This document shows, one piece after another, positions 1-9,800 of a stretch of DNA of 64,000 nucleotides. This stretch comes from Orbicella franksi (Eukaryota), in NCBI GenBank assembly GCA_964199315.1, contig OZ116709.1, positions 2,294,001-2,358,000 of the forward strand, in the 5' to 3' direction. The notes beneath the pieces were generated by a model, which saw only the letters and a list, made by a program, of their open reading frames with translations, had not been told where the DNA came from and did no database searches. Each line of letters begins with the position of its first letter. The first letter of the stretch is position 1. The translations under genes and the position numbers were made by a program.

Positions 1-240
1 CCCCAAATTCTCAGGGACTGTATTGTTTTAAAACCAGGTACAACAATAGGACAACTCTTTGACATCATGCTTTATCCACCAGTTTCTCTTCTTGCTGGAG
101 AGTATGTGAGGGCAGAAGGGGTAAATTCAAAAGGTGTGAAAAATGTGTTACATAAACAAGATGCTGTGAATGAGTCGAACCAGATTGTCAAAATTATGAG
201 TACCAAGAAAGCTTCATCTTCAACAAAGACAAGAAATTAA
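1..240 (+). CDS. 3' end (partial) of a probable Obg-family Ygr210/archaeal YchF-like GTPase, C-terminal TGS domain
   Basis: Frame 1 is open from base 1 to TAA at 238-240: PQILRDCIVLKPGTTIGQLFDIMLYPPVSLLAGEYVRAEGVNSKGVKNVLHKQDAVNESNQIVKIMSTKK. The pattern (L.D...L..G.T ... A ... I.KI.S) recalls the TGS tail of Ygr210-like GTPases. The 5' part lies outside the window. Confidence 0.55.
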   Translation, partial: PQILRDCIVLKPGTTIGQLFDIMLYPPVSLLAGEYVRAEGVNSKGVKNVLHKQDAVNESNQIVKIMSTKKASSSTKTRN

Positions 241-579
241 AAATATTATATATTTATCCACTGGATTAATTTTTTTTTCACAACTGATGTGGATTAAAAG
301 AAAATAGTGTTGAAAAACTCATTAACTGTAAGCAGTATTTTTAATGGGTAATAAATTTCAAACATTGATAACAATAGATGGCAAGACAGACATGTAAAAG
401 AAAATTGAACAACTGGCTTTCCTAGGTAAATAGATAATAGGGGAAATATAATAAAGATTATTTTTTGTAGGTTAAATAGTTAATATGAATTGTTTTTTTT
501 GTGCAAAGTGTGAAGTAAAATGACTATTTTTAAATGATAATCACTAAAGATTATTAATGTGTGACTTAAAATCTAGAGC

Positions 580-3500
580 TCATTTCTTTTCTTTGCTTCC
601 TAATAATTCTTTCAAGAAGAATTCTTCTTCTGTGTAAAATGTCAGTCCACAATTTGCCGCAAATTCCTTATCACTTTTGCCATGATCTTTTCCCCTTCCA
701 GCTGCATCACCAACAAAGAAACTTTTCTTTTTATCAACTTTCACATCACCATTACAGCTTTGGCAAAAGAACTCCCACATTCCTGTGCTGGGCTTACGAT
801 AGGCATCCTTTGATGTGGCCACAAGTATTTGGAATGGGAGATCCACCTGGAAAAAAAGCGTAATGGACCAGGTTCCAGATACGTTTTCAAGGCAGTGTGT
901 CGATAAGAAATTCCAGTGGGTCAATTCCCATTGCTCCCACCTAATCATTATAAATTTCCTCTATTAATTTGTTGTGTCATGTAGCTGACCTTGATGAGTG
1001 TTTGACCCCAGACCCCTCACTTATCTGGAACACTGAATGAAACATCTAAATTATTAAGAGATTAAGAATAATTTGTTCTCCTTGCTATTATTTTATACAA
1101 TGTCAGCCATCATTTGTCACTGGGTATTAATCACTCAGGCATGCAAATACATGGAGAGGGCTATGTATCAGAAGCCCTTTGCATGAACTGTCAGCCTCTG
1201 ATACTGGGTAATAACTATCAGTACTTCAACAACATTGTAAGTGGGTAATGAGCTGCTTAGCTGTTGCCATTGGTACTTGGTATTGGCAAGTACCATAGGT
1301 GTACTGTGCATCATATTTTTTCCTTGTGATTGGAAATGTGGTAGAGCATACTCTCCTACTAATGTTTAACAAAATAATATATTACATCTTGTATATGAAT
1401 CTCACCATTCTGAACTGAACACTGTTTCTTCAACCACAACCCTCTAATAAACTGAGAAAAAAAAAACTGAGAATTTTTTAGCTACCTTTTTGACAAAGCC
1501 TGTGAGTCTTCCTTTCTTTTCATCTATAACCTTTTGTTTTGATGCCTTAGCTTTACGTATTGCAGCTTGATTGGTGAAGATAACAAGTTTATATCCATCC
1601 TTGTGAAGACATGTTAGCTTCTCTATACAGTTTGGGTAAAGTATGGACCATGCATCAGGTCCATGTTTGAATAAAGATGTCTTCGCTAATGTGCCATCAA
1701 AATCAAAACTTGCAATTTTCTCTGAATGCTGGATTTCCTGTGATTCATAGTAGAGTAAGGTTCCTTTCCACTTCCAAGAGGCCAGTGAATTGCCTGTTTT
1801 ATTGGACTTGGAAATTTCATGGCCCTTCATTTCCATTTCTAGAAAAAGTGCAAGTTATTATTAAAATAAATATCTAATTTAATTATGCCAAATCATACAT
1901 GCAGTTAAACAATGACTCTTTTCAGATCTGTGACAAATATAGACTACCCAAACTAATCCACTCAGACACCTTTTTTTCAAATCTATGAAATACCTTGTAT
2001 CTACAACCCTCTGCCCACCAAAACATATCACCCAAAAAATTTATGACCCTGAAGTAACCATCAAACTTCCACACTTCATGTTAGATATATATTTTATGCT
2101 CTCTGCCCTCAAGGGCACCACAGACTGCTATCATGCACTGCTGTACATAACATACTTCCCATGCAGCAAGCACACAGCTAGCAACCAGACAGTGGTGAGC
2201 TGGAATTATGCAGCAACTCCACTACCATCCCCACAAAAAGGAATTTTACTCAGAAATCTGAGCCCCAGGTTAGGAATGGTCCAATTTTTGCAAGGTGAGC
2301 TGGAACTTTATCCCATGTTGCCCTAAGTGTATTTCAGCCAAAGCCTTCCTTTGAAAAGTCAGACACCGCATAAAATTATACCCACCCTCTTTCCCCTCCC
2401 TCGATCGCACTAAACACCTGGTAGGGGACTCCCATATGAAAAGGATGAGTGTGCTCATCAGAAACTTTGAAAAGAACCCCTAACAGGTACAAGATCCTGT
2501 TTTGTGGGCATGGCTTGAAATGTTTTTCATCCCTAAGAGCTACCAATTCTAAAACAAATTATCTGCTGCCATATTTTTTCAGCTCATACCCTAAAAGGTA
2601 CAGCCAAAACTCCTGCTATAGAACTTTTGAGGCTGAACACCCTAATTGCCAAAACCGCATTTTTAAACCCCAAAAGGCACAACGGGCACCCCCCCCCCCC
2701 CCTTGCCTCTGGCTAAACATTGATCACTGCATTAATCAGGCCACAGGTAAAGATGGGCAAAGGTTTTGTTTGGTTACTGAATAACCATAACAAAACGTAT
2801 GAAAGATTCAAAAGATGGCTGTCACCTGCCAAGTAAACAGCAGTTCAAGCTAAGCTCGAGTCTGAAATTTAAGGTCATTCTTCACATTTACATTGCACAT
2901 CCTTACTGTGCATAATTTATGGCGTCATTAGCGCGTGCTCGTGCACGCACATATTGAAAACATGACGGATTTGCCTTGATATTGAGCTCTGTCAGTTGAA
3001 AAATGGTTCTAGCTCACAAACGAGCACAGGCACCCCAATTTTTTTCTAGTCATTGTAATCAACTAATCATAAGCTTTGCGTGAGAAAAGACTAATCTAAT
3101 TTCTATTGCTGAAAATTGAATAAATAAGAAAAATAGCAGACACACTGTGGTCTTTTCTATTTTGCAGTCGGTAACCACGTCAAGAAATTTGGTTCAAATT
3201 TTTAATCAAGGATTTAGCTTTCTGCCTGAATCAAACTTAAAATGTTTATTTGTGTTCGACACAATGCATTAACTGTAGTTTAATGCGTATTCTTTTGAGT
3301 CTGGGTTCACAAAGATTTTACAATTACTGGGAATGCGTTCTTATAACAAGCATCAAATAATGCCAAAATGGGGCATTTTCAATGCCTCACTGCTCCTTAA
3401 TGAGCATGGGCACCCCCCTTTTTTATTTCAAAATTGAAGTTATAATATGACAAATATTCGGTGGACAGAGTTTGAACAAAACCCTATTGTAACTTTTATT

Positions 3501-3729
3501 TCAGAGGAATTACCTTAATAAAGCCTAAGGACCGGAACAGGTAAAAGAATACCTACAATAGTATAGTAAAGCTAAAGAAAGCCAAGGCAATGCATCTCAA
3601 CAGTCTCTTACCTTGGTTAGGTGCTCTAAAGAATCTTTTGATGCTATGTTGTTTGCCGTCGTTTGCATCCTCCTCGATTTCCTCTATTTTTCTTTTCACT
3701 GATTTTGAACTACCCCCTATTTTCGCCAT
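580..3729 (-). CDS. Stand-alone polynucleotide (DNA) 3'-phosphatase, ZDP/Tpp1/PNKP-phosphatase-like HAD enzyme, 245 aa
   Basis: Exons 3729-3612, 1838-1486, 846-580. GT-AG sites, phases 1/0, total 738 nt. HAD motifs DFDGT, IFTNQ, RKP.TGMW and FVGDAAGR..DH..SD are intact. The stop follows EEEFF directly, with no kinase domain. Confidence 0.9.
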
Positions 3730-3868
3730 CTTGATTTGCGGGCTCAATATTATTGATTTCAGCGGTTGCCATCATGACCACCCGTGATGTAAAACACATG
3801 CAAAATGGAGGAATCGTGAACCAAACACACGTGTGGTAGTCAATGGAGAAAATCCAGAGATTGGGATC
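3730..3868. promoter_or_regulatory. Compact bidirectional promoter region between the 3'-phosphatase gene and RBM19
   Basis: Divergent ATGs at 3729 (-) and 3869 (+) are only 139 bp apart. Confidence 0.7.
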
Positions 3869-6800
3869 ATGTCCAGGCTTATTATCAGGAACCTTCCTAA
3901 CAGTATAAAAGAAGAAAGGATCCGTTCTATTTTTGCGGCTAAAGGAGAATTAACAGATGTTAAGTTGTGCCGCACAAAAGATGGAAAGTTCAGAAGATTT
4001 GGCTTCATTGGATACAAAACAGAAGATCAGGCGAAAGCTGCCTTACAGCATTTTAACAGTTCGTTTATTGATACCTCTAAGATAACCGTAGACTTTGCTA
4101 AAAGTCTTGGAGATGAGTCACTACCGCGGCCTTGGAGCAGGTATTCGGAGGGAAGTTCTGCGAACGACAGATTGAAAAAGAAAAAAGAAAGGAAAGCTGA
4201 GGACCTGAAAGATCGAGTTTCAAAACCTACAGAGGCGAAAGATCCAACTGAAACACATAGCATAAACAAACAGAAATCAAGTACTGTAAATGAGAAAAAC
4301 AAGAAAAAGCGGACAAAAGCTTTAGATGACCTAGAAAAGGATACTGAATTTCAGGAATTTTTAAGTGTACATAAACACCGTGGCTCAAAACAAACATGGA
4401 GTAATGATAATGTAGATAGTGGCCAGCCAGAACCAAAGGAAAGTCAGACAAGGCAAAGGAAACAGGAAATAGTCACAGCAAATAAGGTACCGGTATGTAC
4501 AGGACTGCTTGAAATGAAAAGCTATATATACCAGTTCTGCTATCCTAGTTCTGCAATGGGTATGCACAAAGTGCAAGTCAGTGAGTCATGTGACTGGCCC
4601 ATTCCAGTTAGCCTAAATAGCTGTCTAGTTAGCGTGAATAGCCCTCTGAGGAGAGGAAAGGATTGGTTATGAAACCCCTCTACTAACTATGCTCAAGTAA
4701 CCTAAATAACCCTCTAGTTAGTTTGATTTAGCTTAGATAGCTAGTGGCTAGCCATTTTGTTGAAGCCAGTAGGGACTTCTGGCTCAAATGGTTTGTTTAC
4801 AGGTTAGCTGATTGAGAAATAATGCTTTGGTTAGCTTTAATAATACTGGCTAAACTAAATAACCTTCTGGTTAGTCTAAATAGCAGTCTGGCTATCCTAA
4901 GTTAGCTAAGTCAGCTTACATGTTAGTCTAATAATTTATGGGGGTCAGGGATCACAGATCACATGGCTCACTGGCTTGCTCTTTGTACACACACTCCGAT
5001 CCTGTGATGGACTAGCATTAGGAGAGAATACAGTGCAGTACTAGCCAAAATTATTGAAACAGGAAGTACTTTCAACTGAACTGGAATGTTCAGAATGGCA
5101 ATTAAAAGTTAGGTTACTTTTGGCTGGTATTATACCCTTACATTATCAATCAATCTCAATCAATCCTTCTTTATTTGTACTCACTCGGTGTTCAATGAAA
5201 TACATTGCAGTTGTATGTCTCGGAGACCATTGACACATTTAACGTCCTCTGATCTATTGCATTGGAACAGATTTGTACCTTTTGTAAATGCATACCTAGT
5301 TAACTGAACTAAATTGGACACTAGGAATTAGGAAGGCTTTTGGCAGTTTTAAATATTGATAAGAAAGGTGCAGGTCACAGTAAAATAATACTTACTGGTA
5401 GAAAGGCCTCTTGGAGTGAGTTTATAGTACCATTTCATAGGTCAGCATTGTGGTGCCTGTTGGAAAATATTTGTAAACTCATGACATATGTTACAGGGAT
5501 CCATATTAGCAGTCATCCAGTTTCAGAGACAACTAAAAAATTGAAAGGATGACCAAAACAATGCGAAAACTTGTCTGCTGGACAAGTTTAGTTTGACTCA
5601 TTTCAGTTTGAAAGCATTTCTTATATTTTTTATGAGTCCTGTGCATTCTGACCTCTTGTCATTCATTTGGAACTTTCAGAAAGAGAGAGAGTAAAATTTT
5701 GCCATGGCAAGTATGTCATCTGGCCTACTTGCCAAGCTGATGACTTTGAGAAAAAACCACTATGGATCCCTAATGTTAGGAATTCTTACCAGTGTTGTTA
5801 ATAATTTTTTAAGCCATGTTGATCTGTTGGGTTTTCCCTTCTCAGTAAAGACTCTGTTAATGGAATATTCATTTCAAGGTTAAGATCTGTGTTGTTTAAT
5901 TCTTTAATTCACTTCTGTTTCTTCCTTGTTAATTTTATTAGTCATCCAAGAGCCCATTAAAATATGATGACTCTGATGACAGTGGTAATGAAGATGAAGT
6001 TTATGATGCATCAGGTACACTTTAATCATCCACAAGAAAATGCAGTGATGGAAAGACCATTTATATGATAAGGACTATCGATATTGATTCAGGATGCTGA
6101 CTCACTTGAAGATCCGCATCAGAAGTTTTAAAAATGTTTAATGTTTAAAAATATGCCACTCATAAAATTCTTACAAAAGTACATCTGGGACCGCTGTAGC
6201 ACATTTTCCGTATCTGTTTTGATGATGTCATTTCCCACTTTTTCACAGTTGTTTGTGCAAACAGCCAGTTTGTCTACGTTATGAAATTAAAAAATATGTG
6301 TTGGCTTTAACATGTTAAAAACAATTTTTTAACTCACTTACTGCCCTCATATGTAAAATATTGTTTTTACTGCCTTCCACCATTTTATGAAAATCGATCA
6401 GATTTTTCGGAACAACTTAGAAACCCATGAAAGTGGATTTTGGGGAGTTAAAATCCAAAACGTTTCCTAGGGGAGCATTGTCTTAGACCCATCTCAGAAA
6501 TAAGTCACCATTTACCCTAGATTCGCCCCTAATCATAGACCTATCGCTGCCGTGTACTAACCTCTTATATAGTTTACATGAAACCTACAGTGTTCCTTTA
6601 ACCAAATATTGGGCACAAATGTCACTTCTTAAATGAAAATAAAAATTTGAAAGATTTGAATATTACAAAACTTGGCTGGCTCTTTTTACTTCCACTTTCG
6701 CTTTGCTTTGTCTTAAAGGCTTGTGGAGAAAGTGTTTTATTTTTTTGCTGGCAGTCAATGCACCAGTAGACAAGAACAAGTGGAACCCGTGGAGCACAAG

Positions 6801-9800
6801 TTTAATTTGTCATACCTGAATACAGTTGAACCTGTACTATTGGACATCTCTCAATAGCAGCCCCTGGGTTAGTTGTTGTCTGCTGCAGTGAGAGTCAACT
6901 GTAGACAACTTATTATACAGCCCTAGTTTCAATTTCCAGTTGTAGTATGCATTCCCTACAACACCTTTACAAGTGATTCTCATTACTGTACTAATATATA
7001 GAATTTTGTTGCAGGAGCCACAGAAGCATGGACTGAAGATACAAAAAATGGTGAGGAAATTGATGAGGAAGAGACCAAAATAGCCAAGGATTCCAAATTG
7101 TCAGATATGGATTATTTAAAATCAAAGGTTGTTTCAAGCAAACAGAAGACTGTAAAGACCAAGAAAAGTAAAGGATCCCAAAATAATAAAATTGATGATT
7201 CAGAAAATGAAGAGGAGAGGAATAGAGAAAGTTTGGATGATGAACCTATGGATACTAGTGCAAGAGAAAGTGACCAGGACAGTGGTGATAGTGATGATAA
7301 TGATGAGGACGACATTGAGGAGGGTTATGATAATGGAGACGATGCTGATGAAGATGATGATAGTGATAATAACACAGACGACAGTCCCAAAGAATCTTCT
7401 GTATTTGGAACAATTAAAATGAGGGGATTGCCTTTCAAGGCAAAGGAACAACACATCAAAGACTTCTTTGCACCTCTGAGAATAGTAGATATTAGAATAA
7501 TAAAAAATGCCAAGGGAAAGCCAGCTGGCTGTGCATTTGTTGATTTTGGAAATGAGAAAGATATTAAGGAGGCACTGAAGAGAGATAGAGATTGTATTGA
7601 GGGTCGATATATTGAGCTGTTCAGAGACAAAGGAGAACAATCACTAAATCAGGAGATTGACAAAGACAAACCCTGGATGAAGAAACTTGCTGCACAAGGA
7701 GGTGAAGAAGAGTTTGAAAGCATTGCAGAGGTAAGGGAAAATGTAGTGTCAGGCATGTGGTGCGTGCAACAGCTACATCCAGGATAAACTTGATTTCTGC
7801 CACTCTTTCCGGTCTGGCTGCGTTCCTCCGTAGTGAGTGCAGGCTAATGTCCTGAAACAGTGGCTGGTAATTGACCCTAGATCCAGCAAGGTACAGAAAT
7901 GGCTACAGCTTCATAGGCCTTTGCATGCATTGTAGCCTGTAATGCTGGATAATGATCCCTGCCTAAAATGCGAAATTGCAGTACTTAAATCATTAAACAA
8001 TACATTTCTGCCCTGACACTGCCCCAGTGCTTTTATTTGTGACAATAATAGTAATAGTAATAATATTATTATAATACTACTTTACAGGGAGTGGTTGCCC
8101 CTTCTCCCAAGCCAGGGTCTGGTCTACACAGCAGGGCTGCAATTAAAAAGAGCATCCTTATTAAGACCAAACAATGGAGGAGGGAGGGAGGTGCAGTGGC
8201 CTCATGGTTAGTGCACTTGTCTCCGGATCAAGTGGTCCGGGTTGGAACCCTGGCTAGGGTCATTGCATTGTTTTCTTGGGCAAGACACTTTACTCTCACA
8301 GTGCCTCTCTCCACCCAGGTGTATAAATGGGTACCGGCGAACTTAATGCTGGGAGGTAACCTTGCGATGAACTAGCATCCCATCTAGGGGGAAGTGAAAT
8401 ACTCTTAGTTGCTTCATGCCACAAGAAATGGGATAAGCTCCGGCCTGATGGGCTACTCGGCTTGTATGTAGACTTAACCTTAGGGCAAAACAAGTACATG
8501 TAAATTACCAGTATTACCTAAAATAATATTTGAGTCTTTGTTTAAAACACGATGTAGTCTGGTCGACTCTTTCTTCGTAACTTGGCCTATGCATGCTCAG
8601 AGGAAGACTTGCAAAACCTGTTTGACAAGTTTGGTCCCCTGACTGAGACATACCTGCCGTTGGACAAGACAACTAACAGGCCCATTGGAATAGGATTTGT
8701 CACTTTTGTCATGCCTGAACATGCAGTGAAAGCTTTTAATGAGCTGGATGGGAAAATATTTCAAGGAAGACTGCTCCACATTTTACCATCAAAGGCAAAG
8801 GAGACTAAGGATGAAGACACAGGTTTGTAGTGGAATTGTTGTTGTTTTTTCTTTTCAAAAAACCTTTCATGTAGTGTTCTTTTCAGAAGTATTAGTTGGG
8901 TCAAAATATTTAAGATGATCTTTAAAAATTCAAGCTACTAATGTCTACAATCTTTTCAGTTAACACTGCAAACAAAATTAACAATAATCTAACTACCTAT
9001 AGATGGAACAAATCTAGCAACAAATGACCCATTACTCTTTACATGACCCTTTCAGCTGTGTTTGGAGCGCTTTTGTTGTATGTGTGAGGACTAACAACTT
9101 GTAGATAAAGCCGTACCTTCTACCTAAATGTGTCGTGTGCCCTATCTGTGATTGCAGGTGATCTGTGAATGCTTATTGCAAATAACAAAGTCTTCTTGCC
9201 TATACAGATACAGTGACGTCTTTCAAGTCAAAACGTGACGCCAAGAAGAAAAGTCTCAGCAGCCACGATCATAACTGGAACACACTGTTTCTGGGAATGA
9301 ACTCTGTGGCTGATGTCATGGCTGATCAGTATAACACCACTAAAGGCAGCATTTTAGATGACGCCTCATCAAGAAGTCTGGCTGTACGCATGGCTCTCGG
9401 AGAAACACAAGTTGTTACAGAAACAAGGAAGTTTCTTGTGTCTGAAGGAGTTAAGCTTGATGTTTTTGGGCAGGTGTGTTATGCATATAACTCGCTTAGC
9501 TTGTTACTTGTTCTTTTAACTGTCAAATCAAGTATTAAGTATTCTTGATGTCAGGTGTGAAATTACACTAAGTAAACGTAGTGAGTTTAGTTTACAACAT
9601 TTTACATAAGGAATTATTGATATCATGAACAAACTAATTGTGACTTCCTTATCTTAGCCGTCAGCTAAGAGGAGTAAAACTGTCATACTTGTGAAAAACC
9701 TTCCCTTTAACACACCATGTGAGGAGCTCAGGAATATCTTTGCACCATTTGGAAAAGTTGCCAGGCTTGTGCTGCCTCCTTCAGGAATCACGGCTCTTGT

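Follow-up and report, generated by a model that had tools for sequence, protein, structure and literature searches.

A coral stand-alone PNK3P phosphatase with a predicted PCNA-interacting box in its N-terminal tail

DNA ends that carry a 3'-phosphate block polymerases and ligases, and the mode of recruitment of the enzymes that clean such ends defines the repair pathway. In canonical PNKP the FHA domain provides the link to XRCC1/XRCC4, whereas plant ZDP is known to use PARP-type zinc fingers as its recruitment module. A gene in the coral Orbicella franksi raises the question of whether a short peptide that binds the sliding clamp could take the place of these modules. The gene is located at positions 580-3729, on the minus strand, of a 64,000-nucleotide stretch (GCA_964199315.1, contig OZ116709.1, positions 2,294,001 to 2,358,000 of the forward strand; the whole stretch is hereafter the window), and its product begins with a tail that matches the PCNA-interacting (PIP) box, which would be a third, clamp-based module. 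Our analyses suggest that the gene, which is expressed, probably encodes a stand-alone DNA 3'-phosphatase of the ZDP/Tpp1 type, in which a PIP box in a disordered tail recruits the enzyme to PCNA. The features of the gene are the following:

3612-3729, minus strand: exon 1, with the ATG at 3729; 39 codons plus 1 nt, phase 1; encodes the disordered N-terminal tail
3688-3696, minus strand: KRK, amino acids 12-14, part of the block KRKIEE(V/I)E; resembles a nuclear localisation signal
3628-3651, minus strand: QHSIKRFF, amino acids 27-34, matching the PIP consensus Q-x-x-I-x-x-F-F; assigned by sequence match and conservation
1839-3611, minus strand: intron 1, GT..AG; 1773 bases skipped in RNA reads
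1486-1838, minus strand: exon 2, variable linker and first half of the PNK3P domain
1704-1690, minus strand: HAD motif I, DFDGT, amino acids 85-89, exon 2
1578-1567, minus strand: HAD motif II, FTNQ, amino acids 127-130, exon 2
847-1485, minus strand: intron 2, GT..AG; joint seen in three raw-read runs and one contig run
580-846, minus strand: coding part of exon 3, second half of the PNK3P domain; stop codon at 582-580
801-790, minus strand: HAD motif III, RKP, amino acids 174-176, exon 3
711-694, minus strand: HAD motif IV, GDAAGR, amino acids 203-208, exon 3
420-579, minus strand: 3' untranslated region (UTR), with an approximate end taken from stranded polyA read depth

The three exons, joined across GT-AG introns, form a 738-nt reading frame encoding a 245-amino-acid product, in which a 58-amino-acid disordered tail is followed by a complete PNK3P/HAD domain and the protein ends just past the phosphatase domain. 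To evaluate this model we used raw polyA RNA-sequencing reads of three runs carrying the same species label and the contigs of a fourth RNA run. Exactly two joints were observed at the gene, 846>1486 (skipping 639 bases) and 1838>3612, both of which read CT..AC on the plus strand and hence GT..AG on the coding strand. No joint leaving exon 3 was found in the RNA reads, and onward splicing to a kinase exon, which was looked for specifically, was not seen in them. Read depth was 13-16 over positions 424-671 in two stranded runs, spanning the stop codon and the 3' UTR, and fell below position 424; a hexamer scan placed a possible poly(A) signal, AATAAT, at 462. There was no match to kinase-like sequence in window positions 1-6000, and a search of the genome with the AAA_33 family gave no match near the gene. 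Because the RNA ends in a 3' UTR, the flanking genes are kept and give no space to a kinase exon, and no kinase-like sequence was found in 1-6000, we consider the product to be truly phosphatase-only. The first-pass annotation, made from the letters of the window, had described a phosphatase-only product of this length with all HAD motifs, and the gene model, the Pfam match, the joints and the 3' UTR bear this out. A 1173-nt Logan transcript contig from another sample codes for a closely similar protein of 247 amino acids, P0163, which is 95% identical to the window protein over the catalytic domain and matches it in its start, its motif (QNSIKRFF) and its C-terminus and stop.

At window positions 418, 433, 625, 1557, 1657 and 1684, the assembly differed by fixed single letters from all RNA reads, for example T>A at 625 in exon 3 and, in exon 2, G>C at 1557, A>G at 1657 and C>A at 1684. 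Variation between strains or alleles seems a likelier cause than editing.

Identification of the catalytic domain was based on both sequence and fold. The Pfam family PNK3P (PF08645, cut-off 22 bits) was matched in exon 2 over profile positions 1-71 of 161 (E 2.3e-14, 53.9 bits) and in exon 3 over positions 79-161 of 161 (E 4.7e-28, 98.4 bits). Exon 1 matched no Pfam family, FHA included, and PF00645, the PARP-type zinc finger found in the plant matches, was absent from the coral phosphatase in the Pfam search. The HAD motifs line up with those of mouse PNKP, and D87, D89, K177 and D206 are invariant in alignment A1. P0163 matched the mouse PNKP catalytic fragment in the PDB with an E value of 3e-34. 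An AlphaFold2 model of an orthologue, built on a 34-sequence alignment, had predicted local distance difference test (pLDDT) values exceeding 80 in most 10-residue blocks between residues 61 and 240, and compared with the mouse PNKP phosphatase (3U7H/3ZVL) it gave a root-mean-square deviation of 1.6-2.4 Å over about 190 columns at 40% identity. Fold-match scores of other HAD-IIIA enzymes, such as HisB-N and the heptose bisphosphate phosphatases, were far lower. From its homology to mouse PNKP and its intact catalytic motifs, the coral protein is predicted to act as a DNA 3'-phosphatase.

The question of recruitment turns on the N-terminal tail. In the orthologue model, pLDDT was below 50 over residues 1-59, and the PIP motif thus lies within a tail that is predicted to be disordered. 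The first-pass annotation had pointed out KRK and, at 3651-3628, an exact PIP consensus in exon 1, and both are encoded there as described. Comparison of the exon 1 sequences of orthologues, taken from annotated proteins and genomic loci, revealed a well-kept tail block, KRKIEE(V/I)E ... K-Q-x-x-I-K-R-F-F-x-A-P, followed by a linker that is not conserved and that extends as far as the W-K-W with which the domain starts. The KRKIEE(V/I)E block, a probable nuclear localisation or import signal judging from its sequence, is present in all coral orthologues and reads KRKFEESE in lineage L017. At the position of the PIP motif, the lineages carry the following sequences:

Window: QHSIKRFF
P0163: QNSIKRFF
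Desmophyllum pertusum: QKSIKRFF
L009: QENIKRFF
Montipora capricornis: QNGIKRFF
Acropora millepora: QSGIKRFF
Porites (three species): QSNIKRFF
L017: QSSLDCFF
Oculina patagonica: PNSIKRFF
L015: TTDIKRFF
Tara Pacific coral lineage (L010-L012): SLGIKRFL

The box is conserved across orthologues in that the full consensus Q-x-x-[IL]-x-x-F-F was retained in eight of the 11 lineages compared; it is degenerate in Oculina, L015 and the Tara Pacific lineage. L017, a distant syntenic orthologue, is the most informative of these cases. With a GTAAGT donor and phase 1 as in corals, its exon 1 (2624-2780) encodes KRKFEESE and then QSSLDCFF; its flanking YGR210-like gene shares only 53-59% identity with the coral copies, yet the synteny is unchanged. 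L017 thus keeps the glutamine, an aliphatic residue (leucine) and both phenylalanines while the residues between them have changed, which argues for selection on the PIP consensus and not on a basic import signal. In the wider family, the strict PIP pattern was found in 4 of 148 N-terminal tails, all of them from corals, when 0.23 were expected from shuffled tails (a chance rate of about 0.0016 per such tail), and relaxed PIP-like motifs elsewhere in the family showed no overall enrichment (11 seen vs 6.85 expected). A PIP degron recognised by CRL4-Cdt2 was ruled out by inspection, since positions 5-6 of the motif are not T-D and +4 is not basic.

The Tara Pacific lineage, an abundant coral lineage (cluster of 135 members), was observed on metagenome scaffolds, with exon 1 at about 7280-7390, and its KRKIEEVD and catalytic domain are intact. 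With its motif decayed to SLGIKRFL, this lineage could serve as a natural test of whether the enzyme can do without tethering to PCNA.

We then modelled the tail with the clamp. The genome has a single PCNA gene, with exon 1 at G000:C10:30421564-30421905 on the minus strand (locus L013). P0465, a transcript-derived full-length coral PCNA of 266 amino acids, clusters with the Orbicella faveolata 'PCNA-like' protein, and its residues 1-105 are identical to the product of this exon. The complex of P0465 with the 39-amino-acid exon 1 peptide was predicted with a score of 0.74, compared with 0.02 for the best of three controls, on a scoring that is not calibrated on peptides; of 78 solved complexes 51 attained the mark used for this score, as did 2 of 108 mismatched pairs. 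Agreement among the runs covered at least 73% of contacts, and the partner pLDDT was at least 49. Confident contacts in the model were predicted between PCNA residues 40, 43-47, 124-129, 233-234 and 250-255 and peptide residues 25-37: I30 is placed against PCNA 40/44-47/234/250-252, F33 and F34 against 126-129/233-234/250-252, and Q27 against 252-255. We take these PCNA residues to be the canonical PIP pocket, the interdomain connector loop and the C-terminal tail. In the model, the tail peptide is accordingly placed where a PCNA tether, as proposed in the first-pass annotation, would be expected to dock, a result that speaks for likeness to PIP peptides and does not prove binding.

A second enzyme of the family is encoded in the same 497-Mb genome. 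All remaining PNK3P matches of the genome were on contig C10, which also carries the genome's sole match to the PNKP-type FHA family FHA_2 (PF17913; C10:3963515-3963634, E 1.4e-11). A tblastn search with FHA-bearing PNKPs recovered an ordered multi-exon gene at G000:C10:3963506-3992099 on the plus strand (loci L005, L007, L006 and L014), which spans about 29 kb in many short exons and combines FHA, phosphatase and kinase. Its phosphatase exons carry the PNKP-type insertion DAAGRAAGWGPGKKKDFSCSDR, and its kinase exons carry a Walker A motif (AGKTTF), DTLGSWQKC and a C-terminal NFIPRF block. No PIP-like motif was found in its linker between FHA and phosphatase. The separate full-length PNKP that had been suggested as something to look for is therefore present, and the coral phosphatase gene is a paralogue of canonical PNKP, not a fragment of it. 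In HAD motif I the C10 gene has FDLDRTL, in which R replaces the G of most PNKPs.

To place the coral protein in the family, we built a maximum-likelihood tree of 121 phosphatase domains (LG+C20, quick search, with support from the Shimodaira-Hasegawa-like approximate likelihood-ratio test only), in which Tpp1 and Pnk1 were not included by name. The tree was split, with support of 99, into a kinase-bearing clade, which contained the C10 PNKP, and a clade of phosphatase-only and zinc-finger (ZDP) proteins. Six coral sequences formed a clade with support of 100 on the ZDP/phosphatase-only side, where they lay among phosphatase-only sequences of protists, separate from the zf-PARP ZDPs of plants; the sister group of this coral clade had a support of 81 in an open polytomy. 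The coral protein was 55-64% identical to protist proteins from metatranscriptomes and EukProt, some of which have a SAP domain, and 40-46% identical to plant ZDPs. The earlier impression that the core is closer to ZDP than to PNKP was therefore right as to the clade, but the nearest relatives are protist phosphatase-only proteins and not the zinc-finger ZDPs of plants. The same phosphatase core is found across the family with differing recruitment modules: plant proteins have zf-PARP, those of protists SAP or K/E-rich tails, PNKP has FHA and the coral protein PIP. No non-coral animal was among the best 120 matches to the coral protein, and in the ESM Atlas a cluster of 237-amino-acid PNK3P-only proteins was commonest in Nematoda. 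The gene is either an ancient eukaryotic paralogue that most animals have lost, or it was transferred from a protist and acquired the PIP-bearing first exon afterwards.

Two other phosphatase-only relatives, P0055 and P0040 (a pair with support of 100 in the tree), have CFGWNKCLV in place of FDFDGxL at HAD motif I and have lost both catalytic aspartates, and may be pseudo-enzymes. The N-terminus of P0055 resembles an organelle presequence.

The neighbourhood of the phosphatase gene contains the following features:

1-237, plus strand: last exon of a convergent YGR210-like Obg-type GTPase gene, from tblastn with P0516/P0501; 3' bound of the phosphatase gene
3730-3868, no strand: divergent intergenic region of 139 bp between two start codons; presumed bidirectional promoter
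3869-4471, plus strand: start of an RBM19-like multi-RRM gene, from tblastn with P0513 residues 1-195; head-to-head with the phosphatase gene

The order of these three genes (RBM19-like, phosphatase, YGR210-like) is kept in the window and in five other lineages, in all of which the YGR210-like gene lies 340 bp downstream of the phosphatase gene. The head-to-head pair was found at L009, L010-12, L015 and L017, and the region between its two start codons is presumed to be a promoter common to both genes. A symbiont or contaminant source of the phosphatase gene was ruled out by its spliceosomal introns and by the animal flanking genes kept in six lineages. Beyond the YGR210-like GTPase sits an RWD gene, an arrangement kept in all six lineages examined. 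Within intron 1, window positions 2408-3523 contain expressed high-copy repeats, whose RNA word depth in one run rises to about 4000; loose ends are numerous (2490/2521, 3039, 3247 and 3519), as are variant letters, and there is a poly-G tract near 2690-2703. These repeats probably derive from a transposon, a short interspersed element (SINE) or a miniature inverted-repeat transposable element (MITE).

A mechanism can be proposed on this basis. The KRK block would bring the protein into the nucleus, where the PIP box would insert into the hydrophobic pocket of PCNA under the interdomain connector loop, as the motif match, its conservation and the predicted complex suggest. The sliding clamp would then recruit the enzyme to replication-coupled or long-patch repair synthesis, and the catalytic core would strip 3'-phosphates from DNA ends at nicks or gaps, making them usable for a polymerase or ligase. 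FHA-PNKP would instead serve XRCC1/XRCC4-dependent repair, a division of labour suggested by what the FHA domain is known to do in PNKP. Human PNKP is enriched at forks and binds purified PCNA directly (PMC11650725), and it acts on Okazaki-fragment gaps, with no PIP box defined in the human protein (PMC11650725, PMC11949490).

Several observations weigh against recruitment by PCNA. Expression of the gene is low, with a depth of about 2-16 in the RNA runs. The glutamine of the motif has been lost in three of the 11 lineages, to P in Oculina, T in L015 and S in the Tara Pacific lineage, the last of which also lacks the second aromatic residue, and because of this degeneration strict PCNA affinity is not maintained everywhere. 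To our knowledge, the basic KR at motif positions 5-6 is unusual among high-affinity PIP boxes. PIP-like FF motifs may also serve Rev1 or Mlh1. In addition, the score of 0.74 may reflect solved PIP-PCNA complexes that the model has memorised. One rival is a free nuclear 3'-phosphatase like yeast Tpp1, with a tail that is needed for nuclear import or stability alone and a PIP-like match that does nothing with PCNA. KRK and the other basic residues around the motif, its degeneration in three lineages and the existence of protist phosphatase-only relatives that manage without a PIP motif all fit such an enzyme, but the QSSLDCFF of L017, which retains Q, L and FF despite the changed residues between them, does not, and I30, F33 and F34 are placed by the complex model in the canonical pocket when the controls scored 0.02. 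We consider a free enzyme unlikely, while granting it a real chance.

It is improbable, too, that the motif chiefly binds the Rev1 C-terminal domain, as a Rev1-interacting region (RIR), or Mlh1, as an Mlh1-interacting peptide (MIP), which would link the enzyme to translesion synthesis or mismatch repair. PIP, RIR and MIP motifs are generally known to overlap around the FF core, and in most corals IKRFF, rather than the glutamine, is invariant; however, eight of 11 lineages have the full PIP consensus, and the serine ahead of a basic residue that marks a MIP is absent. A diverged HAD phosphatase acting on a non-DNA substrate, such as RNA 3'-phosphate ends or a small phospho-metabolite, is very improbable. 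The HAD-IIIA fold does match HisB-N and the heptose bisphosphate phosphatases, but the likeness to the mouse PNKP phosphatase in identity and deviation is far above that to these other HAD enzymes, and the coral protein belongs to the same clade as the plant zf-PARP ZDPs, of which Arabidopsis ZDP is a characterised DNA 3'-phosphatase. Scarcely credible, finally, is that the gene is the PNKP of the genome truncated by misassembly or misannotation, which is ruled out by the RNA end in a 3' UTR, the YGR210-like gene 340 bp downstream, the lack of a kinase match in 1-6000 and the complete PNKP on C10.

For a PCNA-recruited phosphatase, a wider proposal can be put forward tentatively: stony corals and at least one distant syntenic lineage may keep a second, protist/plant-type 3'-end-cleaning enzyme that is hard-wired to the clamp and shares 3'-phosphate removal with the FHA-recruited PNKP, whether as an ancient paralogue or as a protist transfer. 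The ecological rationale given in the first-pass annotation, in which such an enzyme suits an animal exposed to reactive oxygen species from photosymbionts, is weakened. Desmophyllum pertusum is an azooxanthellate cold-water coral, and because it retains the gene and an intact QKSIKRFF, an adaptation to photosymbiont-derived oxidants is not supported.

The orthologue in Acropora millepora is labelled 'polynucleotide 3'-phosphatase ZDP-like' at NCBI and other coral copies are labelled 'uncharacterized'; we found no paper on the coral gene, nor on a PIP box in ZDP, Tpp1 or PNKP. The gene is already in databases under automatic names, and the PIP-box tether appears to be unreported. If the tether is real, the coral enzyme would be a simple natural model for a recently reported link, of undefined mechanism, that connects human PNKP with PCNA at Okazaki-fragment gaps. 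It would also illustrate how one catalytic core can be re-targeted through swapped short N-terminal modules, and it adds to the coral lineage a DNA-repair gene apparently absent, in this form, from bilaterian model animals.

Other motifs of a related kind were observed in PNKPs. The linkers between FHA and phosphatase of the FHA-kinase PNKPs P0054 (at about amino acid 129), P0101 (about 138) and P0134 (about 122) contain K-x-x-[IL]-x-D-[FY]-F, with KGDITDFF, KRNIQDFF and KRDLNDYF in this group, and the PNKP-like P0076/P0558 of the horseshoe crab Tachypleus tridentatus have TGILIDFF near the N-terminus, at about amino acid 27. [quoted passage not shown]

Among known systems, plant ZDP is one with which the coral protein shares a PNK3P domain of the same clade, the absence of a kinase and a short GDAAGR-x-KDH-x-SD active-site loop without the PNKP insertion, and it differs in having the 58-amino-acid disordered PIP-box tail in place of the PARP-type zinc fingers. 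Animal PNKP has a homologous phosphatase fold and the same catalytic motifs, whereas the coral protein lacks both the FHA domain and the C-terminal P-loop kinase, and the two belong to clades parted by the branch with support of 99. Yeast Tpp1 is likewise a stand-alone PNK3P phosphatase without a kinase, a likeness of architecture only, and no paper was found that reports for Tpp1 a PIP box such as that of the coral protein. In the layout of its tail, the coral protein resembles DNA ligase 1, UNG2 and MSH6, in which an N-terminal Q-x-x-[ILM]-x-x-F-F also lies in a disordered tail, beside a basic stretch resembling a nuclear localisation signal and before the catalytic domain; these proteins have other catalytic functions, and the coral motif is distinguished from theirs by the basic KR at positions 5-6.

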